From Bugula neritina (taxonomy: Eukaryota > Animalia > Bryozoa), in NCBI GenBank assembly GCA_964035545.1, contig OZ037768.1:7534741-7598740 (forward strand): a stretch of DNA of 64,000 nucleotides, in the 5' to 3' direction. Numbering within the stretch: the first letter of the stretch is position 1; the number at the start of each line of letters is the position of its first letter. The notes under the pieces were generated by a model. The model had not been told where the DNA came from. It saw only the letters and a list, made by a program, of their open reading frames with translations, and searched no databases. A program made the position numbers and the translations under genes. Of the stretch, positions 2,551 through 45,595 are shown piece by piece.

Positions 2551-2685
2551 TTTTCAAATAATATGGTATGTCAAGGACAATCATTGTCTATCCAATGAAA
2601 GTTGTACATGTATTGATCAAAAACCCATTGTTGAACCAAACGTTATTTAATGGATATTGCGATTTGTTCTGAAATACCTTAGCTG
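2551..2685 (+). promoter_or_regulatory. Putative proximal promoter/5' leader of orphan gene A; four boxes shared with gene B
   Basis: TTTTCAAAT(AAT)ATGGTA 2551-2568, palindromic GACAATcATTGTC 2576-2588, ACCCATTGTTGAACCAAACGTT 2623-2644 and AAATACCTTAGCTG 2672-2685. The same boxes occur in the same order upstream of the gene B ATG. Confidence 0.6.
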
Positions 2686-2710
2686 TAAATTTGAGCGAAT
2701 TTAGAAAACT

Positions 2711-5700
2711 ATGTCAAAGCAACTAGCGAAAACTTCTGATCCTCGTTCTGCCATGCCCATGTAAGTAAAATATTTTAAAGATGACTGCTTGTGTGCTTCA
2801 AATAATAACTAGTTATATTGTGAAGCTAGTTTGTCTAATACTAATAAAGCTAATATTTTGATATTTTTGGAGTTCGAAGGAATGTCTTGAAAATTGCACA
2901 AAGTAAGTGTATTGCAGACAAGCGCACTCTGTAAATAACTAGTATTGAATCCCTGACTAAACTGGAATCTAGTATTTAGTATAATAGAAATATTATCCAA
3001 CAGGTGCAAAGGCAGTGAGAGAGGAAATTCTCCAACTCTGGTTAAGCGTATAACCAGTGAGTCTTGTCACACTATTGAAGACTTCTCTTTTTGTGACGAT
3101 GAGTTTGAGGGGATCCTGGGGTTAATAGCTCAACGTTATGACTCTTATGATGTCATATCCTCTGAAGAGCAGGAAACTGGTTCGTTTTGAGTTGTTATAT
3201 CAGTATAGTTTCTACTGACATGTTTTGCTCACTCATAAACTAATTGAGGTGTATTTTTTTATTGAATATTTTACATTGTATTACTAGCTAATCAAGTGAC
3301 ATATTATTTCTGTGAACATAAAATATATTTCTTATTAGCTCCGCCATGTTTTCCTCTTCAATCCCTTATAACCTGTACCACGAGAAGTAACAGGGTGCAA
3401 CCTGTAGACTGGAGAGAGTAAGTATCTGTATATTCTGTCATTAACTTTATATGAGTATTTTGTTAGTTAGACTATGAGATATAATGTGACTGTATTTCTG
3501 TTATATCTAATAGGAAGGTGTTGCTTTGTTACTCTAATGAATGACAACTCAAATTATCACTATAATACTTTTTAACCCTTACATAGTGAATGAATAGCTT
3601 GATCAGTGTATTTTATGCCAGTTGTCAATGTAGAAATAGTCTTTCTGTAGATTATTATTATAATACTTTTTATATGTTATCTAGTGAATCCTCTGCCCCG
3701 CCCAGAAGTCAAGGTCAAACTGGTAGCCAGCTACTAGCAAACTTACCACCTTGTAAGAAGACCTGTGATGGCTATTTCTGTATCATAGAGGAAGGGATCC
3801 CTTTTCTTGCTGGTATGTCTTGTCAAGTTAATTTATCTGACTCTTCAGGTCATGTTGTTTCTGACCATTTGATTACAATATTCAACGTATCACCAGCATA
3901 CTACCAATTACACTCTGGGATCTACTCGGTATCACAACACCACAGAACAATGGTAATAATGAGTAATATGTAGAGCACAAATGAAACAAATCATGTAACA
4001 AGTTGTAAGATATTAGAGGTAATATTTTAGGTCCGAGTAGTTCTAGCAAAGGGGCTAGTGGTGAAATCAAGAGACAAAAAACTCTTATGAAGAAAGAGCA
4101 GAAGGAAAGTGGTAAACTAGTGAGTAAGAGGAAAAATGTCGCATTGGAGTGTTTATTGAAAGCAGGTAAACTTTCATACAACATGTGTAATTTTATGTTG
4201 TGAACTTATAGAATTTTTTTTTAACTTGCATGAGTATTAGTTTATGTAACTCTATCATTCACATGTTATTTCTATAGCTGGTTTAGAGTTGAAATTCACA
4301 TTCTTAGTGCAGCAGGGAATCATTATACTCCTTTGTTCTAAGAAATGCATAGTGCTTTTCAGTCTCCATATTTTAACTTATAAAAAACCTATATATGTAT
4401 AGGTGATGCTGGTGGTGCAGTAAATAGTGGTACTACACATGAGAAGATAACTACTGATGAGAAAGGAGAAGCATCTACCAGTAAACCATTCACCAAAGTG
4501 ACTACTTTGCCTTTATTATTGGATGGTAAATTATGTTTAATACTACTAATAGTACTAATATAATAATATGATAATATTTTTATATATTCTATGTTCTTAT
4601 ATATATTTATAACACTAAACCTTAAATTATGGAAAAAGGATAAATGTAAACGAAACAATTGTTGTAACCTAATTGTAATGAAAAAAATAATAATAAAAAT
4701 AATTAGTGGGGCAACTTAACTTTCCTCACTACCACTACTCTGTCATGCTACAAATTATTTCCAACGTCTGCTGATGATGAGATGTCTTTGCAGATTTAGA
4801 TCATTGCTCAGCTTTAAAGTTTTACTGGCTATACATGCATGAATCTATTTGACTGGCCATTAAAACTATAGAAGCTATGCAACTCTTTATTAAGAAAAGG
4901 ATTTTTAGTTTATTTATTTTTTATGTTTGAACTGTGAAAATACTGAGTAGCCTGAAAAAATTTTGTTTTGTTTCCATGTATTTCAAGGCATCTGCTATTT
5001 CACCTAAATATTTCTTTAGGAAAGGAGGTAAGATAGTGTAAGAGTTTAAAATATAGCAGTTGCTATATTCTAAACCATTGCACTATCTAGGTTTTTCAAC
5101 TAGCCCCACCCTCCCCTACATATTTTAACTCATAACAAACCTATATATGTATTACAGGTGATGCTGGTGGTAAGGCAGTAAATAGTGGTACTACACAGGA
5201 GAAGATAACTGCTGATGAGAAACAAGAGGCAACTACCAGTAAACCATTCACCAAAGTGATTTCTTTGCCTCCATTACTGGATGGTAAATTATGTGAAACA
5301 TTCTTAGTAGATCTTTATATATTCTATTCTGTAGCTGAGGAATACTTATATATTGTGGCATGCCTTGTTTCTACGAGTTATTTCTTGGCAGGTGGGAACT
5401 GCTCTGTAAGTCAACTGTTTACCAAAAGCACTCTTGGTAGATATGCTAGACAACAAAGAAAGACCATTACCATTAAAAAACATAACATTCAAGCAGAAGA
5501 TGTTGTTTTGCCTCCAACAACAAACAGTAAACTACTATTTAATTTAACTCTGTTTATGTCAGTTAATTAAAATTGTATTTAGTGAGATATTGAACAAATA
5601 ACATAATATATTCTCAATATTTTAGGCGTTAGAGCACCTGTAAAAGTATTTAAAGCTTGAACCATGTTTTGTGCTGACAATATATTATAATGTGATAACA

Positions 5701-8700
5701 TAAAGTGTCTTGTATAAGTTCGTAATGTGTTATCTTATATAATATTTTCTTGAAGTAAGACATTCCTACGTTATTATAAATGTTTCAATATTTGAATTTT
5801 TAGCTTATAATATATTTGTTAAATGACTATTTCACAGAAAAAGACATTGCTAAAAAGTGGAAGAGAAGAGCTTGCCGTAAAATGTCTCTCATTGTAGAGG
5901 AGACAACTACCAGTAAATCTCAAACTGGAAACTCTAAAACTGTTTCACCTTCACAAGTGAAAGGTAAACAATAAACTTTGCCTTGCCATTTTATTCTATA
6001 CATGTGGCTTGTTTCTTGATGAAATGTAATAATATCAAAGTTTTTATTTTTAAGCATCAAGTAGTTAAAATGTATCAGCTTTCTTTTGCATGACTTTTAT
6101 GATCTGATCATGACTTCTTCCTCAACATTCATGCTGTGATTTGAAAATCTACGAATTACTGTTAGAATGTATGACCAGCTTTATACTCAGTTTAAATCTC
6201 TGTAAAACGAGAAACAATTGTCACATATAATTTAAAACAGGTCACCATGATGCTAGTGAAGGAGATGATGCTAATACAGCTGTTTGCAAGGAGAAGAATG
6301 CTGCTGATAAACCTGAAAGTAGAGAGCAAAGTGCTATGCTGCCTTCTATAATTAATGGTAAACTCATATTCTATAATGATGTTAGCTTTTGGTGCTTATT
6401 TTTGTCTCATTTTGATGGGAATTATGTCATAATTTAATTTGATGCTTTCATTTATTATTAGTGAACTAGGCTGTGATTTGGGCAATAAATCCTCACTGAT
6501 GTCCTTTATTGTATTATTACTCTAACATTACACTGATTGGCATCATTTGACAGTAATTGACATCTATTGACATCAATTGCAAAACTTACATAATCTCAGC
6601 ATAAACATATATAAACAATATAAAAACTACAAACAGTTGTAATCCACAAAAGAGAAACAATATACTGTAATTAATATATATGACTTACTTATTTTTGCTC
6701 TCTTAACATTTCAACTAGTCCACTAGCACCAACTATTGCCAAGTGCCAAAGGTCTTTTAGTTAGCACTGGCTGTGCTGTAGAAAGCTTTTCTTTGTATGT
6801 TTTTGATATAGCTAAGGTAGCTAAGCAAACTCACACTAATTTCACTACATTTAGTGTTATTGATTGAAGCTTAGCATAATATGTTTTTTCCTTCATCGTA
6901 TATCGTTTGTATTCAACTATTTCACAGAAAAAGGCGCTGCTGAAAAGAGAAAGAGAGGAAGAGCTTGCCGTAAGATAGAGGAGGCAACTACCAGTAGATC
7001 TCCAACTGAAAATACTGAAGTTGCTCTTCCTACATTGGTGAAAGGTAGACAATAATTCTTGGGTTCTGATTTAATTCTATATATATAGTGACATGTTTAG
7101 CTATGAGATAGAAACTAGCAGGGGGACAAATGAATTTAATATTCATGCAACAAGAAAGTAAAATTTATGAAAAGTCTGTTTGAATGGCTTTGAATACCTG
7201 TTTATTAATTTTTCCTAAATATACATATCTTGATGGTGCTATTTTTTAAAGGATGCTTCTACTGAGAAAATAATGTATGACCTGCTTTGTACTAAACTTT
7301 AAGCACTAAAAGACATAACAGAACCAGGTCACTAATGTGTTGATGAAGCTATTGATGGAAGATTATGTTACATTTTTCGTCATAATATTGCTTATATTCA
7401 ACTATTTCCCAGAGAAAGACACTGCTAAAAAGAGAAAAAGGGGAAGAGCTTGTCGTAAGATAGCTCCTATTTTGGAGAGGAAAACAACCAGTAAATCTCA
7501 AACTGGAAACTCTAAAGTTACTTTACCTACATTGGTGAAAGGTATAAAGAATAATTCTTGTGTTGAAATTTTATTCTATACAAATGACTTGAAGAAATAG
7601 AAAATGGGACAATGTAGGTTTGATATTCAAACAACAAGTAGCTAACATTTGAAAAATTGTTTTATTTGCAAAGCTTATATGATCTAATCATTACTTGTTC
7701 CTCAACTTTGATTTTGCGACTTGTAGAAGTTTGTTACTGTGAGAATATACTCTGTTTTATTCACTGTAAAAAGAGATAGAACTGTCACATATAATTTACA
7801 ACAGGTCACCATGATGCTAGTGAAGGAGATGATAATAAAGCAACTGTTTGTAAGAAGAAGAATACTGCTGGTAAACCAAGACGTAGAAGGCGAATTCCCA
7901 TGCTGCCTGTTTTATTAGATGGTAAACACTTATGTAATAATTATGCTGCACGTCAGTGTTTATTCTTTTCTCATTCTCATGGGAATCATGTCAGAAGTTT
8001 GTCTGGTATTTCATGTTGTTGATTGAAGATTGCATTACATTTTGTTTTTTCAATATTGACTTTCTACATTAAATGTGCAATTTTGTTAACTAATCTTGTG
8101 ACTTTATATATTACTTTGAAACCATAAAATTACTTGAATTACTATTTGTTGATACACCTCCGGACTATAGTAAACTAAATATACTTTATTGTTGTTTTAT
8201 TCACAGATGAAAGTGATACCAACTCTGAGGTTGAAGCTGCTGCTAAGTCTAAACTGGAAGCCATTTTGGAAATGATTAAGAAAAACCGAAATATTATCAG
8301 ACTGCGTCCATTTAAGAATGGTATGAGTTTTGTAGTGTTGTTGACTTACAGCTGCTTCTACATATTTTAGTGTAGCTATGAATAAACCAGTTTATATATA
8401 GTATTGGCTATTGAATATAGGCTGAATGATTGCCATCATTTAGTGAATTTATTATCTTTTGACTTTCTACTACAATTTTTTGAATCCCAATTGCAAACAT
8501 ATACATTTCTAGGTACAATTGATAACAAGACTCGTGGGAAGATAACTTTTCTGGAGAAGAGACTAAAAACTGTCAGAAACTTCTCAAATAACTCAAGAAA
8601 TGTTCCTCATCTTCCATGGATCAAAAGTAAAGATCCCTTTTGTATTTATTAACTTAACATAACTGTTAAATATTTTTTTGGCTTGATTTACACTTGAACT

Positions 8701-11658
8701 ATTTGCTAGCATTTAAAACACTTTCATATTTAAATTTATAATATCGTGTGAACGTCAGTGCTCTCACCTAACATATTAATTTCTATATTTTCATTGACTT
8801 TTTTTAACGCAAATGCTAGGAAAACTAATAGTTACTGATTTCAAATCAACATTGATACAATTTCTGTTTCCAAACACCATAAATTTTCATTTGAACAAAA
8901 TATTTTAAAGCCGTATATTTTATTTTATCTTGGAAATATATCATTTTGAATATGTGTAACAAATGAGTGTAGTATTGACAAAATATGTTTGCTGTGTTAC
9001 AGTTGGCAGGATTCTTGGAACTCAGGTTTTCTGTAAGCCGAATGTTAAAATCACAAGAAACCAGTTGAAGAAGAATCCATGGCTAATTCATGACAGAAGA
9101 AAAAGAGAGCGGCTAGAGAATGTGCAGTTTTTCAGCTCCGATCTGGAAACAGCCACAACTTCTGACATGTGAGTATGTAGAGATGGTATGAGTCAGAGTA
9201 ATACTTTACTTGTAACAAGACTGATGTACCTGGAAGGTGTACACAGTATCGGTTGTACAGTTTACAGAGTATTCAATTCTGATACAAGCTCACTTACCAT
9301 ACATATGCCCAGTATAATATATATACTCAGTTTATAAAGTATCCAACTCTGCTGTTTATTTTATAGCGACTCACCCACTATATTACTGGTTGTTGTTTGA
9401 TAAACTCACACTTACTAATATTTATAGTAGAAGAAGTACCTCTCTGCCAGACACTCCAGTTTCCATCCATGATCTGTCATCTCTGTCACAGAATACCTCA
9501 GGTTCAGAATCTGTAGGATATTGTGAGTATTCTATTTTTAACACCTTTACCAGAACATAACTTTTAATACTTTACTTTAGCATAGCATTATACGTAGTGA
9601 TCATTAAGTATAGTTATAATATATAATTGTCTCAATTTGACTGAAGCTACTAACCTCTGTAGTTTCACTATGCCTGCACCTTACCTATCATTTCTTCTTG
9701 TCCTGCTAATTTGTCTTATAAATTTTTATCTTAAAGGTTAATGCTCCTTTCATGTACGGGTATCTGCCTACTGTATATAATGTAGTTTCAAACTTTTGAA
9801 AATCTTGCAAGTGGTTATAGAGCTAAAAAGTTTTTTTTAATATCTGTATGGCTGCATTATTGTTGCAATTTAATTTTGTTGCAATGTGTGTTATTATTTT
9901 ATAGCTGACAGAACGGTAACTTTGAAAAAACATGATGTCGTTATGGATCAACAATGTGGCAGGTAAACACATAATCTTCTTATATAATCTCTTGCACTGT
10001 GTAGGGTCAGTGTTGCTTGTAGATTGTAGCACTACCATAACAGATATACACATGTTTAAATTATAATAAGGAGTTTTCACACCTGTGTTATTTGCTTCAT
10101 GGGAAGTTTGTTTTACAATTTTGTTGTTGCCATATTATTTTATTGAATCCTTAAAATTAAAAAAACAATCTTTCACAGTGGATCAAAGCAAAAAGTTGTT
10201 AAGAGAAAGAAATTGAACCTCTCATGGCTCAGTGATTCAGAAGAAGACTCCGCCCACAAGATGGAGTCACTCACTACTCCAACTGCTCATCCACCTACTG
10301 CTGGAAATATCCAGATGGTGTATCCTATGAATGTGAAAACTATTGAAGTCTCTATCAAAATTCACAGTAAGTTTTTAGTTTCTATAGTAGCGTTACACAG
10401 TTGAGGTTATTTGCTTTTGAAACATTTTACTAGTTTATGCCACCCTTTATCATAGCATTATTATATTAATAAAATAAACAGAATATACATCTTTTCAGAT
10501 AGTTACTAATGCAACAGCATGGCTTTTCAATTCTTATTTGTAGAGCTTATGCTATGAAGCTCCATGTTTTACATCTTTGAAGGGCTAAGATTATATTTTG
10601 TCTTACATTATAGAGGGAACAAGATTTTCTTTTACAAAATGTTGTTTTATCACCTTCTCTCTTCTCCCAGAGCCACTTGCAGAGTGTGTGTATAAAACTA
10701 AACTAGTATGTAGTGTCTTCTCTGTTGTAGCTGAGTCAAACCCTTCCACTAGAATAGTTAACCAATGTGATCCAGCAGAGGGAGGGTAAGTTTCTGTGTC
10801 ATTATATTCAGAGTAAGTCACTAGCGGTTCAGTAACTTACTATGGTTTAGTTGTAGTAATTATTGTGTTGTTTATATTGTGTCTTGTGTTATGATGTGTT
10901 GATGTAGACTCTATCTGCTCTCTTAATAATTATATCATATAATATTTACAGGTCCACCACAATAGTACTCCCTCCAATAGAGATTAATGTGCAATCTAAT
11001 AGCACTAAATCAAAGTATGTATAATCTTAATTTGGTGAATAAGTTTTACGTTGTTAGCAAATGTTTACTTTCCTTTGTGTGGCTTTTAACATTACTGGCC
11101 TTATAGTGAGAGTATTTCCCAGACCTTTGCATAAGTTGTTATGTATTAATTATTGAACCAAAATTTACCAAACTCCACTATGTAGAAGATTTATTAATCA
11201 CATATTACTACTTTTGTGAAAAATTTTATAGATCAGCTCCTGTTTCTGATGATGGTGAGTTTGTAAATCTGTTAATTGTTGAATGTTGGTAATTTTAACG
11301 TTTAATTTTCTTTCGTTACAATTACTAATTTATTAAACCTTAGAATTATTTTTGAACTCATTTAACACAAATCTATGGTGACCCTCAACCCCTGAGGTCA
11401 ACTACCTGTCAGCCATGCTATGAGTCATTATGGTTGTTGATCAATAGAACAGATTCACTATGGTTACATCAAGTAACATATTTGTAGTGTATGTAACCTT
11501 TTCCTCCTGCTCTCTGTTGAGTTCTGTTAAGCCATTCAACTAGTAGAAACACTGCAACGTTGTTTTACTGTTTGTGTCTTTCTACAGGTTCTGGTGCTAG
11601 AGGCAGACTGTCAAAGTTTCAAAAATTTCTAAAAGTCATCAAATTGAAAAAATCATAA
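2711..11658 (+). CDS. Orphan gene A: ~854-aa Lys/Ser/Thr-rich, probably disordered protein built from duplicated exons
   Basis: 23 GT-AG exons chain without a stop (2565 nt): 2711-2760, 3004-3179, 3339-3417, 3685-3812, 4031-4165, 4403-4525, 5158-5283, 5392-5526, 5838-5963, 6241-6357, 6928-7044, 7413-7541, 7805-7921, 8207-8320, 8513-8626, 9003-9168, 9428-9522, 9905-9962, 10179-10366, 10671-10785, 10952-11014, 11232-11254, 11588-11658. Starts MSKQLAKTSDPRSAMPM, ends GRLSKFQKFLKVIKLKKS*. AATAAA at 12400. No domain recognised. Confidence 0.8.
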
Positions 11659-11850
11659 AACTTTATTTGTGTATTCTTTTTTTCTATTGCTCTATCATGT
11701 CTAATTTATTCTCACACAGTTCTGTATTATAATAACATAATTTTTTTACAATTCATTTTTGTATATTTAATTATTTTGGTTGCTGTTACTTTATTATTTA
11801 TATATTTTACTTTTAGGTTTACACTAGAATTATTTATGTTTTCAGGCATT

Positions 11851-12229
11851 TACATAGACTGGGTACCCATGTGTTTGGTGTCTGGGGGTTGGTGGACCCG
11901 GGAGGTGTGACGGACAGTCTGATAAATGTTCTCGGGGTAGGGATATCCTCCTTGATCTGTCACTTTCTTTTGCATTCAGTACTCATCACTGGCTAGATGT
12001 TACTATGCTTTGGCACAGTAATGTAGTGTAGCTTAGCTTCATGACTGACTATGAATCAGTCATTGCACACGAAATCCTACACGGCTGGTGTTTGTGTGCT
12101 GTCTGTATATTGGGGTGCTTTTCTCGCTGGGGTATCGCGGCCCTGACTCACATTTGGACGGCTGATCTTGATCACTGAACGGTTTCATCCTCTCTTTGTC
12201 AACTTACGCATGGGTGCACAGCCTATGTA
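11851..12229 (+). other. Structured 3'-UTR RNA element, copy A (long imperfect hairpin)
   Basis: 11851-11874 pairs with 12206-12229 (20 Watson-Crick, 2 G-U, 2 mismatches), with nested helices inside. 11867-12226 is ~90% identical to 43343-43701. Lies between the gene A stop (11658) and AATAAA (12400). Confidence 0.8.
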
Positions 12230-12901
12230 GTTTTAGTTTATTTATTTTATACATTTTATTTCGTGAAATCAATCTTTCAATAGTTTCAAAGTCTTCCTTT
12301 TTTTATTTACTGTAAATATATTTAATATTTTGTAGGATAATGTAGGACTGTATGAGAGTGAACTAGACATGATAGAGCTACATGCTGTTATCTTTATTAA
12401 ATAAATTTTATATCAACACTCCTATTTTGTGGTTTGTTGTCTGCTAATATTAAAACCGAAACTAAGACATAAAAGGAAAATAAAATTCCAGCTATTTCTT
12501 AAATTTTTATAATGAGATAGGAATTGTCTACTAGCCTAGTGCTAATGATTTTAAAGCAGTGTTAGTTTGCTAAATCGTATCAAACAAAATGTGTGGTTGA
12601 GAAATTATATTCGAATAATTTACACACCTTGTTTATAGTATACAAATTAAGACATTTATTTAATAATATAGAACAATTCTAGCACAATTAAAAAATATAA
12701 TAGACTTGATTAATTTTCACAAACGCAGAACTCATTTAAAACTGTTAGAAGCATATATATATGTATAGGCTATATACATATATATTAGTTTAAATGGATA
12801 CGCAATAAAAATAAATTTATATAAGAAAATCAGATAGGAAATTTGAAAAAAATCAATAAATTTGTAAAAAAAAGCTATAAAAAGTTTTGGTATGCTGATA
12901 T

Positions 12902-18399: not shown

Positions 18400-18760
18400 G
18401 GAATGCTTGCTAGGTCATGATCTTTACCAAAGATCCTTAAAAAAGTTAGTTTGTTGTTTTTAATTTTTACGAACTATGTATTGTGCCTCGCTCAAAAAAA
18501 AATATCATGTTAGCTTTTTAAAGGCTAAGAGACGCCTTCTTTTAAAAAATCTGTTACGTCTGCAAGTTGCTCTGTTATCTGTACGTCTGCAAGGCGAAGG
18601 GTCAACTCGCCCAACCCCCATTTTATGATGTAAGCGCCGTAAAGACAGACGACTGAAATTTTGACTTTAGATTTTGTACTCACTTTCCAAGCAATAACCG
18701 GCAGTAGTTGATACTCATAATGGCAAAAACTTGCCAGTAAAATCTCTGGGTAAAGCTTTT
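18400..18760. promoter_or_regulatory. Probable bidirectional promoter of the two PIPOX paralogues
   Basis: Locally CpG-richer stretch between divergent genes, with a duplicated TACGTCTGCAAG. Candidate 5'-UTR donors at ~18750 (+) and ~18273 (-); acceptors at 19343 (+) and 16742 (-) lie just before each ATG. Confidence 0.45.
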
Positions 18761-32039: not shown

Positions 32040-32830
32040 TATCCTTAAAAACTTAACTATAGAGTAACAAAGTAACATTTGGCTCTATCATGTCTAGTTC
32101 ACTCTCTTACAGTTCTACATTATGCTACAAATTATTAAATATAGTTGTAGTAAATAAAAAATGAATTTTGAAAATATTGACATGTTGAAGAAAATAAATT
32201 AAGATATTGAAACAAAATAAACTAAAAAATACATAGGCTTTGCGCCCATGCTTGAGTTACCAAAGAGAGGATTGAGCTGCAATAAGAGAATGTCTTTCTA
32301 TCTGTGCAGTAATGTATTGTATATTTATTTACATGAGGTGAACTCAATGGAAGAAGGAATATTAAAATAAAAAGAGCTTGCACCCATGTTTAAGTAAATA
32401 AAAACATACAATTTCGCCTAATTCAGATTATACATACTTTGATTGAGTGTTAACATTCAGCTCTGTGGGAGGGAGTTTGATTGCGGTGGACCAGTAACAT
32501 AAGACTTCACAAGATTAAGAATATATATACTTTGACTAAGTGTTAACACATTGCACATTTAGCTCTATCAGAAGTAGTCTGATGACTGTGGTGGACCTGT
32601 AATTTATATTATACAAGGAGTGAAAAAAAGTCTTAAAAATAATGCATGAAGAATTTGGTGAACACACCGGTGTTCAGGTTATATAAATGCATGAAAATAT
32701 AAATAACCTGTGTTAATAACATACAATTTCACCAAATCCAAATTATACATACTTTCATTGAGTGTTGACAGAGGGCACATTTAGTTCAATCAGAGGGATT
32801 CTGATGGTTGCGGTGGACCTGTAAATATTA
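32040..32830 (-). pseudogene. Relic third member (C) of the orphan A/B family
   Basis: Three tandem copies (~32818-32753, ~32596-32531, ~32491-32438) of gene A exon 10952-11014 with its intron flanks; two carry in-frame stops and one has a mutated acceptor. They are followed by a gene-B-like 3'-UTR piece (32395-32271) fused to a gene-A-like 3'-UTR piece (32272-32082). Confidence 0.75.
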
Positions 32831-35439: not shown

Positions 35440-35552
35440 TTTTCAAATATGGTAATAATCATGCATCACCTAGACAACAATTGTTCACTCACCCATTGTT
35501 GTTCAAAACGTTGGCTGAGCATTTCATGTTTGATAGAGAAAATACTTAGCTG
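35440..35552 (+). promoter_or_regulatory. Putative proximal promoter/5' leader of orphan gene B; four boxes shared with gene A
   Basis: TTTTCAAATATGGTA 35440-35454, GACAACAATTGTT 35473-35485, ACCCATTGTTGTTCAAAACGTT 35491-35512 (19/22 identical to gene A) and AAATACTTAGCTG 35540-35552, with the same box3-to-box4 spacing as in A. Confidence 0.6.
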
Positions 35553-35608
35553 ATTTTCTTGATATTGCTATTTGCTGCTTACAAAGCTGTTACTCGTGTA
35601 AACTAATT

Positions 35609-38600
35609 ATGTCTGAGAGAATTCCTACGGTCACTTCATCTAACCTGGAGGCTTCTTCCAGAGCCCCTACTCCATGCTCTGAAGCTGATGTCATCGAGGA
35701 AAGCATTGTGCGACTTCCCTCGCCAAAGGAGATGGCTTTTGAGACTTCGGAGAACATTCTCTTTGAGAAACTGCCTCTTGTTTCCAGTGGTATGAATATT
35801 CATTAATGCTTCTTTGTAAAGTTTAAAACATGTATTTCTATATTTTTAATTGGTATACCGTAGGTATTTAGTTGTGCAACCAAATCTTTAGAAATTTCTA
35901 GTATTTGCTTTGAATATATATATACCCAGCGGTTTTTGTATTTCTCGGGTATTTTAAAAAATCTTTCAAATAATTTATTTTATAATTTGCGTGTGCAATG
36001 AAACTTTACACACACTTCGCTGCCAAATTCACTCCTGTGAAGGTCTTATATGTGTTTTCAAAACAAGCTAGTGATTCAGCCAAATTTCAGCAAAAATCTG
36101 CACTAGTTTGCCTTCTGCTTTTTCAATGGGAAGTAATTTGTTCTAATAAATATAAGAGGTGCTCCAGAGCTTAAGTAGGGGAGCTGATGATCCATAGGTA
36201 GTGTCTCTTTAGGCTCTCATGTCTTGCATCTTTGGGCTTACTTTTCTGATCCACAAAAGTTAGCCCACTCATTCATGTCTGCCATTTTCACCAACATAGG
36301 TTGACTGGTGTATAAGTAGACCCATTAATTTAGACCTCGAAGCACTAATTAATTTGGTTTAGTTGAATCAGCACTATGGAAAGCTTTGGTGCATTAATTT
36401 TGTATGTGATCTTGACAAGCCTGGGGCTCCAGTCTTTACTACAGGGACTTACAGGCTCAATTGGCACTCAAACCTGCAAGGTCTCAGCTCTAACTCTAAC
36501 TACCTTATAAACTGACCTTGGTTGTTTCAGCAAACTCCACCAATTAGCCCCAAAAGGCTAGCAGCTTCTGCTTGTCTTCCAGGGGTGGATAATGCCAATC
36601 TTCTCATAATTATCAATAATAATTAGCTTCTGGTGACTGCTTTAGGTATAATCCTTTGCCCTGATCAAACAATTCTTCTGTGGAGAGTTTATTCTCTGCC
36701 ATTGTCCATCTCTTTTTTCTTTGCCAGTCTATCTGTCAAATTTGGTGTTTATTTTGTAATAATCATGTGCGTGCGTGCGTGTGCTACTTATGATAGCTTA
36801 ACTTTAAATAAACAGAACATTAGCTTAGAAACTGTTCTAGGCAAATGACATGAGCCAATAAACTCTAAAGACTTTCCACATTTTATTCGAATCTGATTTT
36901 GCATTTACATCTTCAACCAGTTTCATTACATTTATATTTTTGTTTGATTTTAATAGTGCAAGTATTTTATACTATATATATTGGAGTCATTAATTTACAA
37001 TGTTGTAGCTGAAGGTGAAAAGAGTGCTGAAGTGCAAGATTCTAAGGCTGGGAGAAGCAAAGTGTAAGTATAATTATATGTAATATATTCTTTAATATCT
37101 GATTGCTACTTTTTACTCCATAAGCTGTATTTAAGCATGCTTTAGCTAGTATGGAAAGGCTTTTAATAATTTGCTGCAGGAATGCACTCAAGAGAAGAAT
37201 GCAGAATGCGAAGGAGTTTGGCGATGAGCTTGAGAAGAGCCAATCGTTTGAGGAAGATTCCGATGTTTCTGAAGAGAAACCTGTAACACCTGTGTTGTCT
37301 AATGGTGAGCAGAATATATATCTGTCTAAAAGCTCATCCAATTTTATAGCCACTATCCCTGTGAGAACCCCTGATGGAAAGGGCTCTTTTAATCTGGCTG
37401 AAGACTGTTCAGATGAGGCACATTCAGAAACAATTATGATATTCCGAACATCACCAATAACCTTTACTGGGATTCTGAACCCATGACCTCATGTTTACTA
37501 AGCCAACCTCTACCACCTAGAACATGGCTGCTCTCTCAGAATATATGCTTTCATAGTATATGGTTAAACTTTAAACATATAATAATCGTTTTATAATCTT
37601 TTGAGTAAGTAGAAAATATGTTTCTTACTAAAAACGGCTTGCCTTGTGATACTGTAATAATTGTATGAACTGCATAAGGAAGTTTATTATTTGGCTTTTC
37701 TTGCAGAAGAAGGCTGCACCAAGAGCTCTGCTCAGGGCAAGCAGTGAGTATGCGTATAGGTTACTTGGTATGGTAAACTCTATAATTTAGTATAAGTTTC
37801 GAGTTATGGTATGCTTTGCTATATATAAGATGCAGTATATTTTGTTTAAAAATTTGCATATATGCAAAAAAATAAATATTTCGCACCAGTTGTAAAACTA
37901 TTTTTTCGTTGTTCATCTCGTTTCATTTCGTTCTAGCAGAAGTGTGCTGAAAAGCAGATTGGGAAAAGCCATGCAGTTTGGAGAAGAAGTGAAGAGGAAT
38001 GTGAATGATAATGATGCTGTGCCCAAAACTGACCAACTGATGGCCAGTGACAATGTTACTATGTCTCCATCTAGCACTAGCCCTATGAAGGATGCCTTAC
38101 TTGAAAGTACGGTTGTAATTTTAATATTGTAATAATTGGTTTGTTTTATGTTGTTCAGGGAAGTTTGTGAGTTTTAGTTCTGTCTCGTTCATCATATTAT
38201 CATTTCCTTCTGTTTAAATTAAACTTTTACATTACAAAATGGTGCGCGAAACTGGGGAGAAAAAAAGAAATTTGTAGCTACATAAACAAAAGTAATTCAA
38301 CTCATAAATTAAGTAATAGAACTTTGAGGAATCATTTTTTTCATCCTTCACAATTCATCCTGCATCATGGTCAAATTTGTAGTGTTTCTATTTATAGTAT
38401 ATTTGCACCGCATCACTTTAAAATTTGATACGTGCATAATGAAAGAAAGTTTATGTTAAAAACATAAAGCAAATAATTGTGTGGATCTGTAACTTGTGGT
38501 AATTTGAAATATAGTACTTTGTAGATGATGAAACTGTTAAAATATTAAAATGACGTTTTAAAAAATTGTATATTTTATAGAGAGCGCATCAAAAGCTTTC

Positions 38601-41600
38601 ATTGCGTCTAAGAAGGAAACTAGTTGTGGAGAATCTAAGATGTGAGTTTGGCATACTTTATTGTAATTTTTTCAATTGTTCAATTGACTCAGACACTTAA
38701 TGATGCATATAAAGATTTTCCATGTCATTTCATTGTGAAATACTTCCAAGTCCAATTATTCTGCGGTACTTGCTGCAGGAGTGAGTCACAACACGAATTG
38801 ATGACAGAGTTGAATGAGCAAGAACCAATCAAAGATCTGATTGCTGATGCAGAGATGGAAGATGATGCAGAAATTCCCGAGGAGATTGTTACCATTTCCT
38901 CCAAGACTGCTAAACCTCTAGAGCTATCGCATGCTTTAAATGGTAAAACTTTAACTTCCATATTGGTAAGAAATAATAAAGGTGTTGCTGCTGTATTGGC
39001 ATTGTAACTAATAATGTAGCTTTTAACTGCATTAAGCTTTGGTATGTATTTCAATTTCTCACAATCCCAATGTATCCAGATGTGAAAAGCAACAAGAGAG
39101 TTGCTTCGGCCAGAGTGGGTAGACTGAGACCACTCAGGAAATTGTCCAACGATGTGAAGTTGGAAGATGATGCAGAAATCCTTGAAGATACCATGGACAT
39201 CTCTCCTAAGACTGTTAAGCCTGTAGAGCTCTCACCTGTTTATAATGGTATAACTTTACTTTTTATTCTTTATTTTATAACAAATAGCAAATCATTTTGT
39301 TATTGTAATTAACTGTTCTGAATTTATGTATATGTTTCATATTTACTGAAAGAGTTTGAATGTATCCAGATGTGAAAAGCAACAAGAGAGTTGCTTCAGC
39401 CAGAGTGGGTAGACTGAGACCACTCAGGAAATTGTCCAACGATATCGAGATGGAAGATGATTCAGAGATTCCTGAAGAGATCATGGACATCTCTCCTAAG
39501 ACTGCTAAACCTGTAGAGCTCTCACCTGTTTCAAAAGGTGTCATTTTAATTTTTATGCTGTATTTATTAAAAAAGATTTTGTTGTTGCATTGGTGTTGTA
39601 ACTTATCTTACTTTATATTTCATAGCCAGTGAGTGGTTGTTGGGGCACCACAAATGAGTTGAAAAGCTCCCCCCAATTCTCCCACCACCCCCCCCCCCCC
39701 CCCCGACTGCCGGCCTTTCACTTTTCTCCAGATAGTGTTGAGAGTAATATGGTCTACTCTTGGACATTGTCTTTACAACGTTTCCTCTACTTTCTTTATC
39801 CTTGACTTTCTGATATCATCCTTTGAATAATGGTGTTTTCAAGGTCATGTGATCTTGTAATATGCTCATACCATTTCAGTTTAAGTGAGGAGGTTATTAT
39901 AGCATGCAAAGCCCTTTAGATTTGGTTTGGAACTAGCTTCTTCATTTGTCTGTATGGTATTTTTGTATAACGTGAAAAATGTTTGGTACCATCTTATTTC
40001 CAAGGCTTAATTGAAGGTCAGCTGTGAGCCCAATCAGTTGGATAAAGAAGGCTGATGTCAAAAGAATTGCAGTAGTCTGATTTTGTGCTTGCTGATAGTT
40101 TTGTCTTTCCAGGTGATGAAAGTCCTTATCACTAGTTTGTGGTCACTTTCTATGTCTCCCATTCAAAAGGTTCTGGTTTTGGCAATATTGATATTCTTTA
40201 CCATAATGTAATCCATTCAGGGTGATGTTCTAAGTCTATTTCTTATGTGTAAACAGACAAGTTTGATTGCCAGAATGAGGCTGTGAACTCCAAAAGTCAT
40301 AATCCATTGTCATTGGTTGTTGGTGTAGCTAATAATGTAATCAGTGTTTTTGAACTTAGGTGTGTATTTCACTTGTCCTGAATAAGTTTTAATGTATCTA
40401 GGTGTGAAAAGCAACAACAGAGTTGCTTCAGCCAAGATGGGTAAGCTGAGACCACTCAAGAAGTTGCCCAACCGTGTGAAGTTCGAAGATGATTCGGAAA
40501 TCATCGAAGAGATCATGGACATTTCCCCTAAGGCTACCAAGCCTCTAGAGCTCTCGCCTGTTTCCAATGGTATAATCTTACTTTTAATTTTTTTTGTTTC
40601 TGCGTTGGCATTGTAACTAAGAATAATTGTAATTAAATGCTTTGAACTTATGTATGTATCTCATATTTACTGAAAGAGTTTGAATGTATCCAGATGTGAG
40701 AAGCAACAAGAGAGTTGCTTCAGCCAGAGTGGGTAGACTGAGACCACTCAGGAAATTGTCCAACGATGTGGAGTTGGAAGATGATGCAGAAATCTTTGAA
40801 GAGATCATGGAAATCTCTCCTAAGGCTGCTAAACCTGTAGAGCTCTCACCTGTTTCTAATGGTATATATAACTTTACTTTCTATTTTTTATAAAAAATAA
40901 AAAAGAATTTGTTGCTACATTAGCAGTGTAACTAATCATTGTAATTAACTTTTTTGAAATTATGTACTTATTTCATGTTTTCTGAAAGATTCTTAATGTA
41001 TCCAGATGTGAGGATTAACAAGAGAGTTACTTCAGCCAGAGTGGGTAAACTGAGGCCACTCAAAGAATTGTCCAACGATGTGGAGGTGGAAGAGGATGCA
41101 GAAATCCCAGAGGAGATTGTTAACATATCTTCTAAGACTGCCAAATCTCTAGAACTCTCGCATGTCTCTAAGGGTATGTCTTAACTTTTTATTTTTTATA
41201 AGAAATAAAAAAATTGTTGCCAAATGGTGGTGCATAATAACTTAGAAACTTAGTTCACTTAAACTCTAAATTAAATGTTTGTAATTCGATATTAAACTTA
41301 CTTTTACAGAGCGAGTCCTTATGTATCCAGATGTGAGGCGCAACAAGAGAGTTGATTCAGCAAGATCGAGGCAGTAAGCCTGTTTTAAATTATTTATTTT
41401 AGTATCTTTAGGTTAACATCTTCAGCTAGTTGGCTAATTAGTAAGTTACTGAAAGTTAAAAAAGGATTTAACAATTCACCCTTTTCCTTATATATGTTTT
41501 TGCATACAGCCGGTATAAGTAATTGAAATTGTGATTTTTATAACAATGAAATTGTGGTGGTTACAACAATAGACTCACTATAAACCACACCCATCATTTT

Positions 41601-43148
41601 ATAGATTTTAAATATAAAACTTGCATGTGCATGCTTTTATTAAAACCTATGTTTATTGTTATCAAATATGTATGCATGCTACCCAATAATACGATGTCTG
41701 GTAAAATATACTAGCTTTGGCTAATTTCTGTTTCTTAGCGCCACATACGGTAGTAATACTAATGATAAAATGTTGTATCTTAGGAAAGTAAAGCCCATTC
41801 ACAAGATGAATTCTGATATTGCTACAATACCAGAGGAAAAGGATGTACTCTCTGAAAGTCCTTGGTCTTGTAAGCATCACATAATTTTTCTTTTTACAGA
41901 GTAAATTGCTGAAATATAATTACTGAAACATTGCTTAGCTCTGTTGTGTGTGACTATGAAACAATGTTGTCTGGTAAATTCCGTAAAACTGAAATATACT
42001 GATAGGCAAATGCAGAAATGACTAAAATGAGCTGTATACATGATCTGTGAATTTTTGTTAAGAGTTGTAACGTATTTAATTCTAGCTGACAGTCCATTGA
42101 GAGTGTCCTCGGCAAGCATAACCAGTACTAGGACACCTGACATGTAAGCACTTTTATTATATTCAAAGAATTGTAACAACTGCTGTTATTTATTATGTAC
42201 AATAATGTCTGTATACTTTAAATAAAGTTTCTAAAAAGATGCAGCTTTTTTAAATTGTGAAGTTATTTATTTTATTGCAAAATTAACTGCGCATCACCTG
42301 TTGCTTGTTTTCACAGAAATAATATTATCCAGATGCTCATTGTGACACTGTTTTTGCTTTTAGTAAACCTAGTGATGTTCTTAGAAGTCCTACACCAATT
42401 GATATGGACACCACATGGCTTAGTAAACAGGAGAATGCAACCATAACAAGAATATCTCCTTCTATAAATTCCATAGATGGTAGAGAAGATGGCCACCAGG
42501 TCAAAACAAGTAATGCAGTGAAACCAAACACCAATTTTCAGAGTAAGATTAACTATTAATGTTTTGACTTTTTTACACACCTGTATTTTTATACCACAGA
42601 AATATTATTATGACAGTTTAAATCTTTTCTAGCTTCTGATATTTATATATTAGTTGAAAATATTATTTTCAAAATCGGTGCTTTTAAGTGCCCTTTGCCG
42701 CCTGCTTATGTTATTTGTTTTTACATATTTTTAGAAGTAAATAAAAGCATTTTCTTGCATTTAAAAGACATTCAAACTTCAATTTTAAAATACGTTAAAA
42801 TTGAACGGCAAGGCTAATCATATAAAATATATACATGCTTTAGTATTTTTTCTATTCTCACTTATCTCCGCTTTGTCCTGTTCAGGTAGCGGGATATACA
42901 TGCTTTAGTATATTCTTCGTAAATGTTGATACATTTATTTTTGTTTATTAGGTTCTGGGGATCTTGAAATTATTGGTAAAAGTGTTCTTTCTAAACCTTT
43001 CCCCCCACAAAGACAGGCCAATAAATACTTGCAACAGCCTTACATTCCACGACCACCAAAAAATGCAGAAGTAAACACTGTTGCTAAAGCTAACCGTGAA
43101 GCTTTGAAAGCGATTAGACTGAAAAGAATGAAAAGGCAGGCAAAGTGA
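35609..43148 (+). CDS. Orphan gene B: ~729-aa charged repeat protein with five 56-aa exon-encoded repeats
   Basis: In-frame chain (2190 nt): 35609-35789, 37009-37063, 37180-37304, 37707-37743, 37937-38106, 38581-38641, 38779-38942, 39080-39247, 39370-39537, 40402-40569, 40694-40861, 41006-41173, 41310-41373, 41784-41869, 42333-42542, 42952-43148. Possible extra exons 41510-41518 and 42086-42143; structure near 42.1-42.3 kb is ambiguous. Ends EALKAIRLKRMKRQAK*. AATAAA at 43802. Confidence 0.75.
37342..37535 (-). mobile_element. tRNA-derived SINE, diverged copy in a gene B intron
   Basis: Homologous along its length to 14434-14640 and 59341-59545. Confidence 0.75.
39625..40310 (-). mobile_element. 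Decayed 3' fragment of an RTE-clade LINE
   Basis: Minus strand ~39882-39750 reads KLKWYEHITRSHDLENTIIQ...RKRCKDNVQE*T, resembling the RTE ORF C-terminus (LKWYGHVTRS.GLAKTILQG...KRWEDNIKEWTG), then a GTGGTGCCCCAAC tail. It enlarges this intron to 864 nt versus 122-144 nt for sister introns. The upstream boundary is approximate. Confidence 0.7.
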
Positions 43149-43300
43149 CTTATTTTAATTTATTTATTTATTTTTATTTTAAATTATAATTTGCATATTT
43201 ATATATTATCTTAGTTTTTACCAAACTCATTTGTGAATTTTTTACGTTTATTTTTTTAGTTGAAATACCTTCTTGTTTTCCAATAGCCCAATAGTAGATT

Positions 43301-43732
43301 GAAGACAGCATGTGCTCAGAGATGAAAGAATAGAATGAATATCCATGTGTCTGGTGTCTGAGCGTTGGTGGGACCGGGAGGTGTGACGGGCGGTCTGATT
43401 AATATTTTCGGGGTAGGGATAACCTCCTTGATCTGTCACTTTCTTTTGCAGTCAGTACTCATCACTGGTTAGATGTTGCTATGCTTTGGCAGAGTAATGT
43501 AGTGTAGCTTAGCTTCGTGACTGACTATGAATCAGTCATTGCACACGAAATCCTACACGGCTGGTGTTTGTCTGCTGCCTGTATATTGGGGTGCTTTTCT
43601 CGCTGGGGTATCGCCGCCTGACTTATATTTTGATGGCAGATCTTGAGCGCTGAATGGTTTCATTTTCTCGTAGTCACCTTAAACATGGGTGCACAGCCTA
43701 TTTAATTCTGAACTGAGTACATGCTGAACTTC
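43301..43732 (+). other. Structured 3'-UTR RNA element, copy B
   Basis: 43343-43701 is ~90% identical to 11867-12226. It is closed by a B-specific stem, 43306-43319/43713-43726. Lies between the gene B stop (43148) and AATAAA (43802). Confidence 0.8.
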
Positions 43733-45595
43733 CCCTCCCATATTCCTTTACAGTTTAGTTTCATTTTAATTTTCCTTTTTTCATTGAGTTTACATCATGT
43801 AAATAAATATACAATACATTACTGCACATATAAAAATGCATTCTTTTATTGCAGCTCAATATATTATTTTAGCTTTTGTCAATTTTAAATGGTGAAACTT
43901 GAAACATCTTTCTTTGTCATAATTAATCACAACAACTCTTAGTTTCATATACAGTTTCCACTGCTAAATGAGCGGCAGTTGATGAGATCATAAATGTATT
44001 TGCTTAGCAAAAATATTTATTTAGTTGGAACTATTTAATTGACTCGATGATTTGTAATAAAAAATAATGATTAGGCTTACAAAATAAACAACAAAAGTAA
44101 TATAAAAATTTAATATAACCTATAAATTTTAAGAAATGTAAATTGATTATGTGTTGTTGCTGGAATTGGTTAATAGCTTACCTTAAATGTTAAGGGTTTG
44201 AAATGTTTGAATATAAATTAATATCACAAGCAGAAAAATACAACAAAGGTTTGCTCAACAATAATATGTTCATTCATTTGTAATGGCTAGCAAAACTCTG
44301 AGCATTTATATATAAAACATGTAAGTAGAAAAATATAAGTAGAAGCCTAAAGGATATTAGTACATTGCACAACACTTATGAAATATACAACTACAAAAAA
44401 TATGTTGATTGATCTTCAAACGCCTCAGCGATAGTCTGTGTACAAATCAAAATACAAGTATCAATCCAACAAACATTATAAATTACATCTTTCATATAAA
44501 TAAATAGGCTATGGCCACAAGGAACGGATTTCTGAACGAACCATTATCGGCAAAAAAGGCTGTTTTGTGCGGATTTCATGTCAAAATGCTGCCAAAAGTT
44601 TCTGCGGTAATGATCTAATTGGCTGATCCTTATTAAGTTTTACATTATCCTTACAAATTGTTGAGAATAGCAAGTGAGATTTCAAAATGAAAGCATGTAT
44701 GAAAGGGCAGTAAAGCTATTGGCAAATACAACAGGTTACTTGAGTTTCATTTCCACACCATATTGCATGTGGTTTCTAACATGAAATTCCGCTTCATGTG
44801 ACCCTAGTTTTAGACAGCAGCATAGCACGTTGCTGAGCAATATGCTAGAGCTATGTTACAGCTATGATGTATTTAGACTAAAAATAGATTAGCATAATCT
44901 ACATGTTACTACAAAAATACCAAATTTAATACTAGAGCTCAATACAAAAATAATTCAGCGTTTTTTAATTCTTTTCATCTAGTAGCAATGTAACTTAAAA
45001 TAAACTTTAAACAAGTCAGTGTCAGTAATGAGTTGGTTACATGTTTATTGGCACCTCGACTTTGAGGACTACGTCATCAAGATGAAATGACAAAATCAGC
45101 TCCACAGGCCATATTACATCTGTAAAATTCCATGTTACTCCGCCTTTACTTGTAGCTAATATAGTTTACTGGTGGCTACAATAAATAACACAGAGTACTG
45201 GCTCATTACATAAACAACAATAACTGATAGAATTATACATTTTTATTATCTTAATAAGTTACAGTAGTACATAGTTCCATATCTGTTAGAGAATATTTTA
45301 TTTAATTCTAGTCAAATGATTTAGTGTGGCTATGGCTTCAGCCAAATTGAACTAAACTAAACTATCTGCCCTCTGATTGGCTAATTTTGTGTAGTAACTT
45401 GAATAAAAGACAGAAACCCTATCAGCAAGTAAATATAAATGAGGAAAGGAGAAGTGAACACATTGTTTTTCTCACAGATTAACAAGATAATGCACACACA
45501 CCCATAGTTTAAGCAGTTGAAAAAAGCTGGTAGTGTAACCATGCTTCCAAAATAAAAGGTAAGTCACATAATGGACAAGTTAGTTAATCAATGCC

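Follow-up and report, generated by a model that had tools for sequence, protein, structure and literature searches.

Localization elements in 3′ untranslated regions (3′ UTRs) often belong to mRNAs for disordered, rapidly evolving proteins of the germline or of patterning, and the 16-mer of VSG 3′ UTRs has the role of a control motif. The RRE, RcRE, and RmRE elements are long stems of 350 to 500 nt with a branched apex; they occur on intron-retaining RNA, together with an Arg-rich protein from the same unit. To our knowledge, most localization elements are less conserved than near-total sequence over 380 nt, and we know of no localization or translation element that forms a near-identical 380-nt module common to paralogs with unalignable proteins. 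Long fold-back RNAs are also known from Drosophila, where the arms of hairpin RNAs (hpRNAs) are homologous to their target genes (PMC10317233).

Here, we describe a family of protein-coding genes of Bugula neritina whose tightest constraint falls on a structured RNA and not on the encoded protein. The family consists of A, A2, A3, B, the divergent member D, and decayed pieces; each of the 5 intact members ends in one ~380-nt 3′-UTR element, referred to here as the rod. The rod represents an RNA family that Rfam does not contain, and the genes provide a small, testable system for how orphan genes inherit a posttranscriptional program. A described cis-regulatory RNA in Bryozoa was not found in the literature.

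Two neighboring genes with unalignable proteins

Genes A (2711 to 11658) and B (35609 to 43148) lie 24 kb apart in the window, by which we mean the whole 64-kb stretch of DNA analyzed. As the original prediction had it, both lie amid ordinary conserved genes (WD40, DAO/PIPOX-like, GST-like, and myosin/SH2 neighbors). Both model as stop-free reading frames, and the introns in both models are GT-AG only. The features of the two genes are as follows:

2551 to 2710, plus strand: upstream region of A, with boxes TTTTCAAATA, GACAA..ATTG, CCAAT, CCCATTGTTG..AAACG, and TAC(C)TTAGCTG
2711 to 11658, plus strand: coding sequence (CDS) of A, a 23-exon, stop-free model of 834 aa (pI 9.7), disordered, with several K/R clusters
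4031 to 8626, plus strand: 11 phase 1-1 exons of A; three exon types among them have been amplified locally
10952 to 11024, plus strand: exon 21 of A with a read-through stop (...SKYV*), an alternative terminal exon with a ~1.4-kb 3′ UTR that retains the last two introns
11588 to 11658, plus strand: last coding exon of A in the spliced form, with a short basic/aromatic amphipathic tail
35436 to 35608, plus strand: upstream region of B, collinear with that of A minus a ~29-nt CCAAT segment
35609 to 43148, plus strand: CDS of B, a 17-exon, stop-free model of 737 aa, disordered and S/T-P rich
38779 to 41173, plus strand: repeat array of B, with one partial and five full 168-nt phase 1-1 exons (the latter spanning 39080 to 41173), found nowhere but B in the genome
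42952 to 43148, plus strand: last exon of B, with a basic amphipathic helix at its end

The lack of alignment between the A and B proteins, previously judged by eye, was borne out by a Smith-Waterman score of 69 (versus 63 ± 10 for shuffles), and the two exon arrays share no nucleotide similarity. Both proteins fall outside the known families, as had been supposed: no homolog outside Bugula was found in Pfam, in sets of 5.8 billion and 1.8 billion proteins, or in the ESM Atlas, with B searched as single exons only. Full-length searches used public proteins, and the A and B models were searched exon by exon; Pfam gave nothing for the exons or for the public full-length proteins. Two non-Bugula matches, both to long repetitive proteins, were dropped because they lacked a credible alignment. 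Public proteins that match the A type are EB796_022472/3, 022477, 022480, 022491, and 009614. AlphaFold and ESM models of family proteins are of low confidence (AlphaFold pLDDT of 36 for the paralog P0009), and the proteins are intrinsically disordered and probably nuclear.

The middles of these genes change as exons and exon doublets that preserve the frame are gained and lost. The order and number of phase 1-1 exons in A differ in each copy and isolate, and exons 3 and 4 of A form a skippable 1-2/2-1 doublet. Middles built of phase-1 symmetric exons, as originally described, are found in both genes (11 such exons in A, 5 of 168 nt in B, in arrays unlike each other), but about half of the exons belong to 1-2/2-1 doublets. 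To call the protein or its middle freely evolving was an overstatement. The proteins are under purifying selection at a dN/dS of about 0.35 (single-copy exons, 0.33 to 0.41 in A and 0.35 in B; repeat exons of B, 0.30), and only the repeat exons of A come near neutrality (0.64 to 1.2).

The C termini do not unite the family. The last coding exon of A is open in 7 of 7 A-type copies, as ..K[LF]Q[KN]F[FL].., and the hydrophobic moment of its tail is in the top 2% of windows. The PIP-box of PCNA-interacting proteins reads Q-x-x-hydrophobic-x-x-aromatic-aromatic at the C terminus; A-type and D tails show hydrophobic-x-x-F[FL]K spacing but no conserved Q, B lacks the spacing, and an amphipathic helix fits equally well. 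The proposed LKxI[KR]LK[KR] ending is present in A and B (and in 27 of 1,000 shuffles) but absent from A2, A3, and D, and in B the motif lies 5 residues before the end. Of the last exons described as beginning ag|GTTCTGG, that of A is an alternative terminal exon, as judged from unspliced RNA contigs over 10951 to 12060 and from three public models that end in the exon 21 read-through.

Upstream homology between A and its paralogs begins at about 2551, and copies in the second assembly are 94 to 95% identical. The B upstream region differs from that of the ortholog L042, in which every B splice site is kept, at 1 of 173 nt, and introns differ at 8.8%. The four promoter boxes thought to be shared by A and B are indeed collinear, although the likeness is patchy. 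Their local score of 37 was reached by 7 of 3,000 random windows, 4 of which are apparently true paralogs, and the p value of the match is therefore about 0.001. A promoter HMM detected no further promoter in 263 kb of sequence. The CHR-like and CCAAT boxes are weak evidence because such hexamers are frequent by chance (0.66 and 0.41 per 200 bp, respectively); CCATTGTT is rare, at 0.01. Since the upstream region of D has a weak, partial likeness to an A3-type promoter (a level reached by 20 of 2,000 random windows) and none to that of B, the RNA element marks the family more than the promoter does.

A structured 3′-UTR RNA in every intact member

The elements downstream of A (11854 to 12232) and B (43330 to 43707) align over 379 nt at 89% identity (E = 3e-140), close to the ~360 nt at ~90% of the original prediction. 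The rods and their closing stems are as follows:

11689 to 11729, plus strand: 5′ arm of the A-type outer clamp, about 39 bp
11853 to 12232, plus strand: rod copy A, 380 nt, about 130 bp paired, 25 G-U pairs, forked apex
12338 to 12378, plus strand: 3′ arm of the A-type outer clamp; RNA contigs stop at 12368 to 12377, and a candidate poly(A) signal, ATTAAA, is at 12396
43306 to 43726, plus strand: rod copy B (43329 to 43707) with its 14-bp B/D-type outer stem (43306 to 43319 paired with 43713 to 43726)

Rod A folds with a minimum free energy (MFE) of −149.6 (z = −5.4), and its longest helix is 12 bp. Across copies, 25 to 31 G-U pairs stand against 0 to 2 A-C mismatches, and the sense fold beats the antisense fold by 37 to 58 kcal (45 kcal for copy A). 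The ends form an imperfect inverted repeat, CATAG...CTATG, with TA/TG flanks, from which pairing extends outward as copy-specific stems. The same rod is thus closed by differing outer stems, the A-type clamp and the B/D-type stem, and differences between B and D1 in the latter are compensatory. A candidate AATAAA lies downstream of rod B at 43802.

BLAST and a covariance model retrieved 9 to 10 rod copies genome-wide, all within family loci or debris, with F, G1, G2, and P as orphan partial copies. Genome BLAST gave no match outside the family at E ≤ 0.001, and a covariance model of the apex scored 150 candidates without finding an additional copy. The Rfam 15 covariance models gave 0 matches to the rod at the gathering score and two chance matches at E ≤ 10; ARAGORN found no tRNA, and a conserved open reading frame in the element was not found. 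A 20-mer scan of metagenomes returned a single match, 21 nt long, isolated, and attributable to chance, in a contig of 55% GC. Hammerhead, C/D box, 7SK, SRP, and telomerase-template candidates were dropped by eye, as a workable motif order and Rfam support were both absent.

The rod lies in sense, 3′ of the stop codon, in A, A2, A3, B, and D, as well as in four A-type genes and B of other isolates. A-type spliced transcripts and the rod are present in RNA contigs of four studies, and an unspliced contig (10951 to 12060) joins exon 21 to the rod, confirming for the A type that transcription runs through the element. Introns near exon 21 are covered in 4 runs, and upstream introns have zero depth. 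In the A type, the rod is therefore part of mature mRNA, in sense and past the stop codon, and it presumably is in B and D as well. Because their identity to A is mostly 85 to 95%, the RNA contigs derive from other isolates or paralogs. Run X6 gave a depth of 215 for the exon contig and 31 for element contigs, contig depth being a poor measure.

The case for a single family comprising A and B, as originally predicted, hence draws on the shared structured RNA and the homologous upstream region and has lost the family-wide C-terminal motif. There are ~10 rod copies rather than hundreds, always in sense 3′ of the stop in intact members; A-type transcripts include the element; and neither protein falls in a known family. 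Two diverged isolates carry A, A3, and B in synteny and with open reading frames (the automatic sA and sA3 models each have one frame shift), and the C4 cluster has 2 full copies in one isolate and at least 3 in another. The family, known to date only from the Bugula neritina complex, has spread by DNA-level segmental duplication with introns kept. Between A and B lies one decayed piece:

31591 to 33044, minus strand: pseudogene mosaic P, a scramble of an A-type UTR piece, three copies of exon 21, a B-type downstream piece, a rod 3′ end, A3-type downstream sequence, and a rod middle fragment

This piece had been taken for a dead third member. It does mix A-type and B-type parts, but it is scrambled and on the minus strand, and neither promoter nor 5′ exons were detected in it; P is a trace of ectopic exchange.

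Selection on the pairing and sequence of the rod

Strong purifying selection holds the pairing and the sequence of the rod alike. Against a between-isolate background of 7% in exons and 9 to 14% in introns (8.8% at B, 13.7% at A), rod A differs from its ortholog at 6 of 380 positions (1.6%; p = 3e-17 against the intron rate), rod B at 11 of 378 (2.9%), and the B/D-type outer stem at 0 of 28; the 5′ arm of the A-type clamp differs at 3.6%, versus 13.7% for introns. The rate of change of the rod is 3 to 8 times below that of neutral DNA, and in A the RNA is slower even than nonsynonymous sites (0.016 versus a dN of 0.048). Transitions in the rod keep pairs in 23 cases and break them in 8 (Fisher p = 0.006), with a background asymmetry of about 1.1 to 1.4; double-sided pair changes number only 8 because the copies are so similar. 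Variable sites make up 32 of 122 unpaired and 51 of 258 paired positions, and the center varies least. Such conserved loops and apex fit a structure read by protein rather than a Dicer substrate.

Slow change and pair-keeping changes therefore place the rod under RNA-level selection and set it apart from a fold-back transposon (MITE). A MITE relic, or a mobile cassette inserted in or carrying the family genes, would account for the terminal inverted repeat with its TA/TG flanks and for the orphan partial copies, but we consider this very unlikely. Only 9 to 10 copies exist, rather than many at unrelated sites in random orientation, folding is strand-asymmetric, and the gene ends showed neither a common border resembling that of an element nor a target duplication. 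The cassette alternative raised in the original prediction is further disfavored because two diverged isolates share the orthologous position and A-type rods have remained different from B-type rods. The rod as a current mobile element is largely refuted; it may have arisen long ago from a transposon and been domesticated since.

Among family copies, the rod is 89 to 96% identical, and the proteins of the genes that carry it align barely or, by now, not at all. Gene conversion by itself, with no special function of the rod, might explain why D2 is 3.4% from A though their introns are unalignable, and exchange has occurred, given that 50 of 105 site pairs fail the four-gamete test and that P exists. 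Nevertheless, rod A is nearer its ortholog (1.6%) than its same-genome paralogs (2.4 to 4.6%), A-type and B-type rods are 11% apart in each of two isolates, and changes keep pairs. Gene conversion may contribute, but the ortholog comparisons refute it as the sole cause, which makes this explanation highly improbable.

Proposed function of the rod

The function of the rod is approached here through its structure and conservation. Our preferred reading, to which we give about an even chance, is a segmentally duplicating orphan family that carries a cis-acting, protein-bound mRNA control rod. The rod would most likely act in cis by docking RNA-binding proteins, namely, Staufen-type double-strand binders and apex-specific factors, and would govern mRNA localization, storage, or translational timing in one cell type. 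The CCAAT, CHR-like, and Sox-like boxes hint weakly that these might be proliferating cells or the germ cells of the original prediction, which also took the family's mRNAs to be co-regulated. Counting against the reading are the degree of sequence conservation over 380 nt, beyond that of most known localization elements, the small number of double-sided pair changes, the origin of most RNA contigs in other isolates or paralogs, and the lower depth of the element contigs in run X6. New copies would survive only if they retained the rod and the upstream boxes; the ends would thereby define the family, and the low-complexity protein would drift under moderate constraint.

An unlikely alternative is that the rod is a trans-acting RNA cut from the 3′ UTR, either a hairpin-RNA or miRNA-like small-RNA precursor or a stable noncoding RNA, that selection acts chiefly on this RNA, and that the protein genes are hosts. 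Conservation beyond that of nonsynonymous sites, a long G-U-rich fold-back with sharp borders, and a 96% identical rod on gene D, whose protein is nearly unrecognizable, would suit such an RNA. Bryozoans have kept siAGO, but DICER2 is missing (PMC11114477). Moreover, the helices are short, conservation peaks at the apex, and an Rfam match is absent; the rod arms do not derive from the family CDS, antisense matches to the A and B CDS or 5′ regions do not exceed those of shuffles, and neither does self-targeting of family mRNAs.

It is also possible, but unlikely, that the rod represents a new class of self-contained RNA module and the real unit of selection, either released to act in trans or bound by the family's basic proteins in a Rev/RRE-like loop that would control the two terminal isoforms. 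Bugula would then host the rod in several genes, beneath which disordered proteins diversify via exon shuffling.

Quite unlikely, in our estimate, is a selfish or conflict system, whether a wtf-like driver and suppressor or Rev/RRE-like autoregulation in which an Arg-rich protein would balance the terminal isoforms through its own rod. Dispersed copies, a copy number that differs between isolates (2 versus at least 3), many decayed pieces, the two alternative C termini produced by intron retention, the Arg/Lys clusters, and a wtf-like architecture (PMC5478263) would all be in keeping with it. However, single-copy exons show no excess amino acid change (dN/dS of about 0.35), both of the diverged isolates keep A, A3, and B open and in synteny, and Arg-rich clusters are few in B.

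Comparison with known systems

Like wtf (PMC5478263), the Bugula genes form a dispersed multiexon family with a near-identical noncoding flank (the 288-bp conserved_up in wtf) and diverging coding regions; both systems also differ between isolates, undergo ectopic conversion, and produce two isoforms from each gene. However, wtf genes encode spore poisons and antidotes and their conserved block is upstream DNA, whereas the Bugula block is a structured 3′-UTR RNA and its proteins are soluble-type and disordered. A link to LTRs was not seen, and Pfam and database searches, which gave nothing outside Bugula, revealed no homology to Wtf proteins.

Trypanosoma VSG genes (PMC5698767, PMC8051951) are likewise a variable protein family whose mRNAs have a conserved 3′-UTR element in common. 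Theirs is a short linear motif on the surface-antigen mRNAs of hundreds of genes, and the Bugula element is a 380-nt rod on five intact genes of intracellular type. Within the part of the source that bears on them (PMC6920530), the human core duplicons NBPF/Olduvai and NPIP offer a parallel in lineage-specific segmental duplication, copy number variation, a shared core, two structural gene versions, and intragenic repeat amplification. That part describes no ultraconserved UTR RNA, several of those genes are positively selected, unlike the Bugula genes, and there is no sequence homology.

Drosophila hpRNAs (PMC10317233, PMC10292708) resemble the rod as long fold-backs on polyadenylated, spliced transcripts in a dynamic, multicopy setting. 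Their arms derive from target genes and they require Dcr-2, whereas the Bugula host is coding, target homology was not found in the A and B CDS and 5′ regions, and Bryozoa are without DICER2. The likeness of the rod to the RRE, RcRE, and RmRE is one of analogy only: the Bugula gene is cellular, retroviral sequence was not seen, and an Rfam match to the RRE is absent. The elements of bicoid and Xenopus Vg1 and the oskar stem-loop (PMC3964905) are, like the rod, structured cis elements in 3′ UTRs; these serve single genes, whereas the Bugula rod is a module across paralogs.

Gene models and coding sequence

Two gene models in the window, which lies at G000:C4:7534741-7598740 of the 216,009,554-bp assembly, are stop-free with all introns GT-AG:
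2711-11658, plus strand: gene A, 23 exons, 834 aa
35609-43148, plus strand: gene B, 17 exons, 737 aa

Gene A RNAs are spliced, since RNA contigs from four studies carry at least 8 predicted junctions with GT..AG joints (e.g., 7042>7411, 9522>9905, and 10366>10731) and depth is zero in three intronic bins in every RNA run. Most of these contigs, at 85-95% identity to A, derive from other isolates or paralogues, and the contigs cover the A type; support for B comes from its orthologue, which keeps every splice site at a dN/dS of 0.30-0.35, so that B is taken as a real gene. B repeat number is equal in two isolates, and one orthologous repeat exon lacks 32 nt in contig L042 but is apparently full-length in L044. 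Homologous proteins come from a second B. neritina assembly (GCA_010799875.2), where they are listed as hypothetical. Measured against the window genome, this assembly and a pair of JGI contigs show a dS of ∼0.12; we take them to come from a different species within the known B. neritina cryptic-species complex, so that they serve well as outgroups.

When spliced models were queried exon by exon, family proteins had neither a Pfam hit nor any credible homologue beyond Bugula. Their residues are ∼69% disorder-promoting, and the predicted fold of a paralogue (P0009) has a pLDDT of 36 (Atlas, 0.34). As originally noted, the A and B proteins do not align better than shuffles. The supposed free evolution of the middle exons, on the other hand, was not borne out: single-copy exons have dN/dS values of 0.33-0.41, and A repeat exons alone approach or exceed 1, a value inflated by best-hit pairing among repeats. 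Phase-1 symmetric exons describe this middle only in part, as about half of the exons are 1-2/2-1 doublets. Doublet exons 3 and 4 of A are skipped in three public models, and middle exon content differs in every A-type copy. Exon 4 could also continue via a 36-nt in-frame intron and positions 3849-3952, so that a short isoform would end at a stop near 3970; these 104 nt (within 3813-3970) lie outside the main frame, yet four other A-type copies conserve them at 93-97%.

The last exon thought to be shared is open in its spliced form in all copies, but the terminal exon is alternative, with exon 21 read-through (...SKYV*) present in RNA and public models. Rather than the proposed LKxI[KR]LK, the common feature of last exons is a basic-aromatic amphipathic tail. 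In A (window 11588-11658), A2, A3, and D, the C terminus follows a hydrophobic-x-x-F[FL]K pattern, absent from B, that is reminiscent of PCNA-binding boxes of a non-canonical kind or of a membrane-binding helix. B has 19 S/T-P sites, twice the expected 8.7; many fall in repeat exons (window 39080-41173), where each lies beside a basic and an acidic patch, possibly forming a phospho-regulated repeat.

Elsewhere in the window, PIPOX/DAO-like genes form an inverted pair (12.9-16.3 kb, minus strand; 20.4-24.7 kb, plus strand) with exons 72-80% identical, and a short-period tandem repeat (56303-56799) lies inside the myosin gene region.

Family members

A genome-wide BLAST search with the 3' element (hereafter the rod) returned 10 matches, and a covariance model gave 9 at the same places. 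Besides A and B, the loci are as follows:
A2: C4, 50-60 kb away, minus strand, full paralogue with introns and open frame
A3: C2, full paralogue with introns and open frame
D: C4:5326033-5330945, 12 exons, 329 aa
D1: adjoins D, duplicated terminal fragment
F: rod 3' half, in both assemblies
G1/G2: shortened rod copies (76%) beside a decayed A-type promoter
P: window 31.6-33.0 kb, minus strand, mosaic with A- and B-type pieces in scrambled order

P matches the dead member originally noted in mixing A and B parts, but is scrambled and on the minus strand. The D N terminus aligns with that of A (score of 52 versus 23.5±3.9; 0/1000 shuffles), and D repeats the A terminal exon pattern (55 nt phase 1-2, phase 2-2, 23 nt phase 2-1, last exon phase 1). 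Full A-type genes number at least three in the second assembly against two in the window genome, each with a terminal rod in the same orientation. The family has undergone DNA-level duplication and exon gain and loss.

At decayed locus G (G000:C2:20,560-20,568 kb), a 3.9-kb tandem duplication holds two shortened rods; both precede, rather than follow, the first two exons and promoter of a degenerate A-type copy. Upstream of the F half-rod, L012:2221-3595 (G000:C4:7467.2-7468.6 kb) holds about ten ∼130-bp tandem units with a TPR-like reading. Retrotransposon-like fragments (RTE-type by eye; L024:6940-7180 and L025:5450-6970) directly follow the D1 and D2 rods.

The 3' UTR rod

RNA contigs confirm that A-type transcription runs through the rod, as the original prediction required. 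The A copy (11853-12232) folds into a single rod of ∼130 bp whose apex carries two hairpins (MFE, -149.6; z, -5.4); the B fold is less stable relative to its background (z, -1.3 to -1.9). In each of the six full copies, the sense-strand fold is 37-58 kcal/mol more favorable than the antisense one, with 25-31 G-U pairs and 0-2 A-C mismatches. Neither this sense bias nor the G-U excess is expected of a decaying DNA palindrome, although the folding algorithm itself favors G-U. The A rod and its orthologue are unlike at 6/380 sites (1.6%, versus 7.6% in exons and 13.7% in introns; p = 3e-17), the B rod and its orthologue at 11/378 (2.9%, versus 6.6% and 8.8%); between paralogues A and A3, the values are 3.7%, 16%, and 27%. 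Among Watson-Crick pairs, pair-keeping transitions outnumber pair-breaking ones 23 to 8 (p = 0.006), with significance lost (p = 0.08) when B and D1 are left out, against a background bias of ∼1.1-1.4. Double-sided pair changes are few (8), unpaired sites are mostly invariant too, and variation is least at the center. Outside the rod, an A-type clamp of ∼39 bp (11689-11729 : 12338-12378) and a different 14-bp outer stem in B and D are each conserved between isolates. Both sense-strand structure and sequence of the rod are therefore under selection.

That gene conversion alone explains rod likeness is highly improbable. The D2 rod differs from A by just 3.4%, and the four-gamete test fails for many site pairs, a result that recurrent G-C/G-U toggling can also cause. 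However, the other isolate's A orthologue (1.6%) is closer to A than any same-genome paralogue, and in both isolates ∼11% separates A-type from B-type rods. These patterns require purifying selection, to which conversion may contribute.

The rod contains no conserved ORF, and a 69-aa gene publicly annotated over it (L037:20330-20582, second assembly) is therefore probably an artifact. A tandem array with an 846-bp period (G000:C2:1,007,859-1,045,093 and beyond) matches a rod 13-mer with one mismatch and probably represents an unrelated array, either a satellite or RNA genes.

With about even confidence, we read the rod as a putative cis element: RNA-binding proteins would dock on it and set localization, storage, or translation of the family mRNAs. 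A trans-acting RNA is a less likely reading; against the coding and 5' sequences of A and B, the rod gave no antisense match better than shuffles, and its conserved apex and loops, short helices, and lack of target homology (no genome match at E ≤ 0.001 beyond the family) argue against a Dicer substrate, as does the absence of DICER2 from Bryozoa (PMC11114477). A conflict system or Rev/RRE-like autoregulation appears doubtful, and a transposon relic very unlikely.

Upstream region

The promoter boxes originally noted in the same order stand insofar as the upstream regions of A, A2, A3, G, and B can be aligned in collinear fashion across ∼160 nt, but the A-B match is modest (p ∼0.001). D shares with A3 only a weak CCAAT..TTTACA segment (20/2000). 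Because only 1/173 sites differ between isolates, the B upstream region is strongly constrained; part of the upstream region may be 5' UTR. The boxes, which we take to resemble CHR, CCAAT, and Sox sites, hint at proliferative or germline expression, weakly so because CHR- and CCAAT-like boxes are common by chance.

Comparison with known systems

The rod has no Rfam match and is undescribed there and in the literature that could be searched. The rod-bearing family is a well-supported, lineage-restricted finding with a putative function. VSG genes have shared 3' UTR control; the Bugula family resembles them in this respect and is not a VSG member. Nor is it a member of wtf (PMC5478263), with which it shares a conserved flank and a variable multi-exon body. 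Core duplicons (PMC6920530) likewise do not include the Bugula family, and their architecture works alike.
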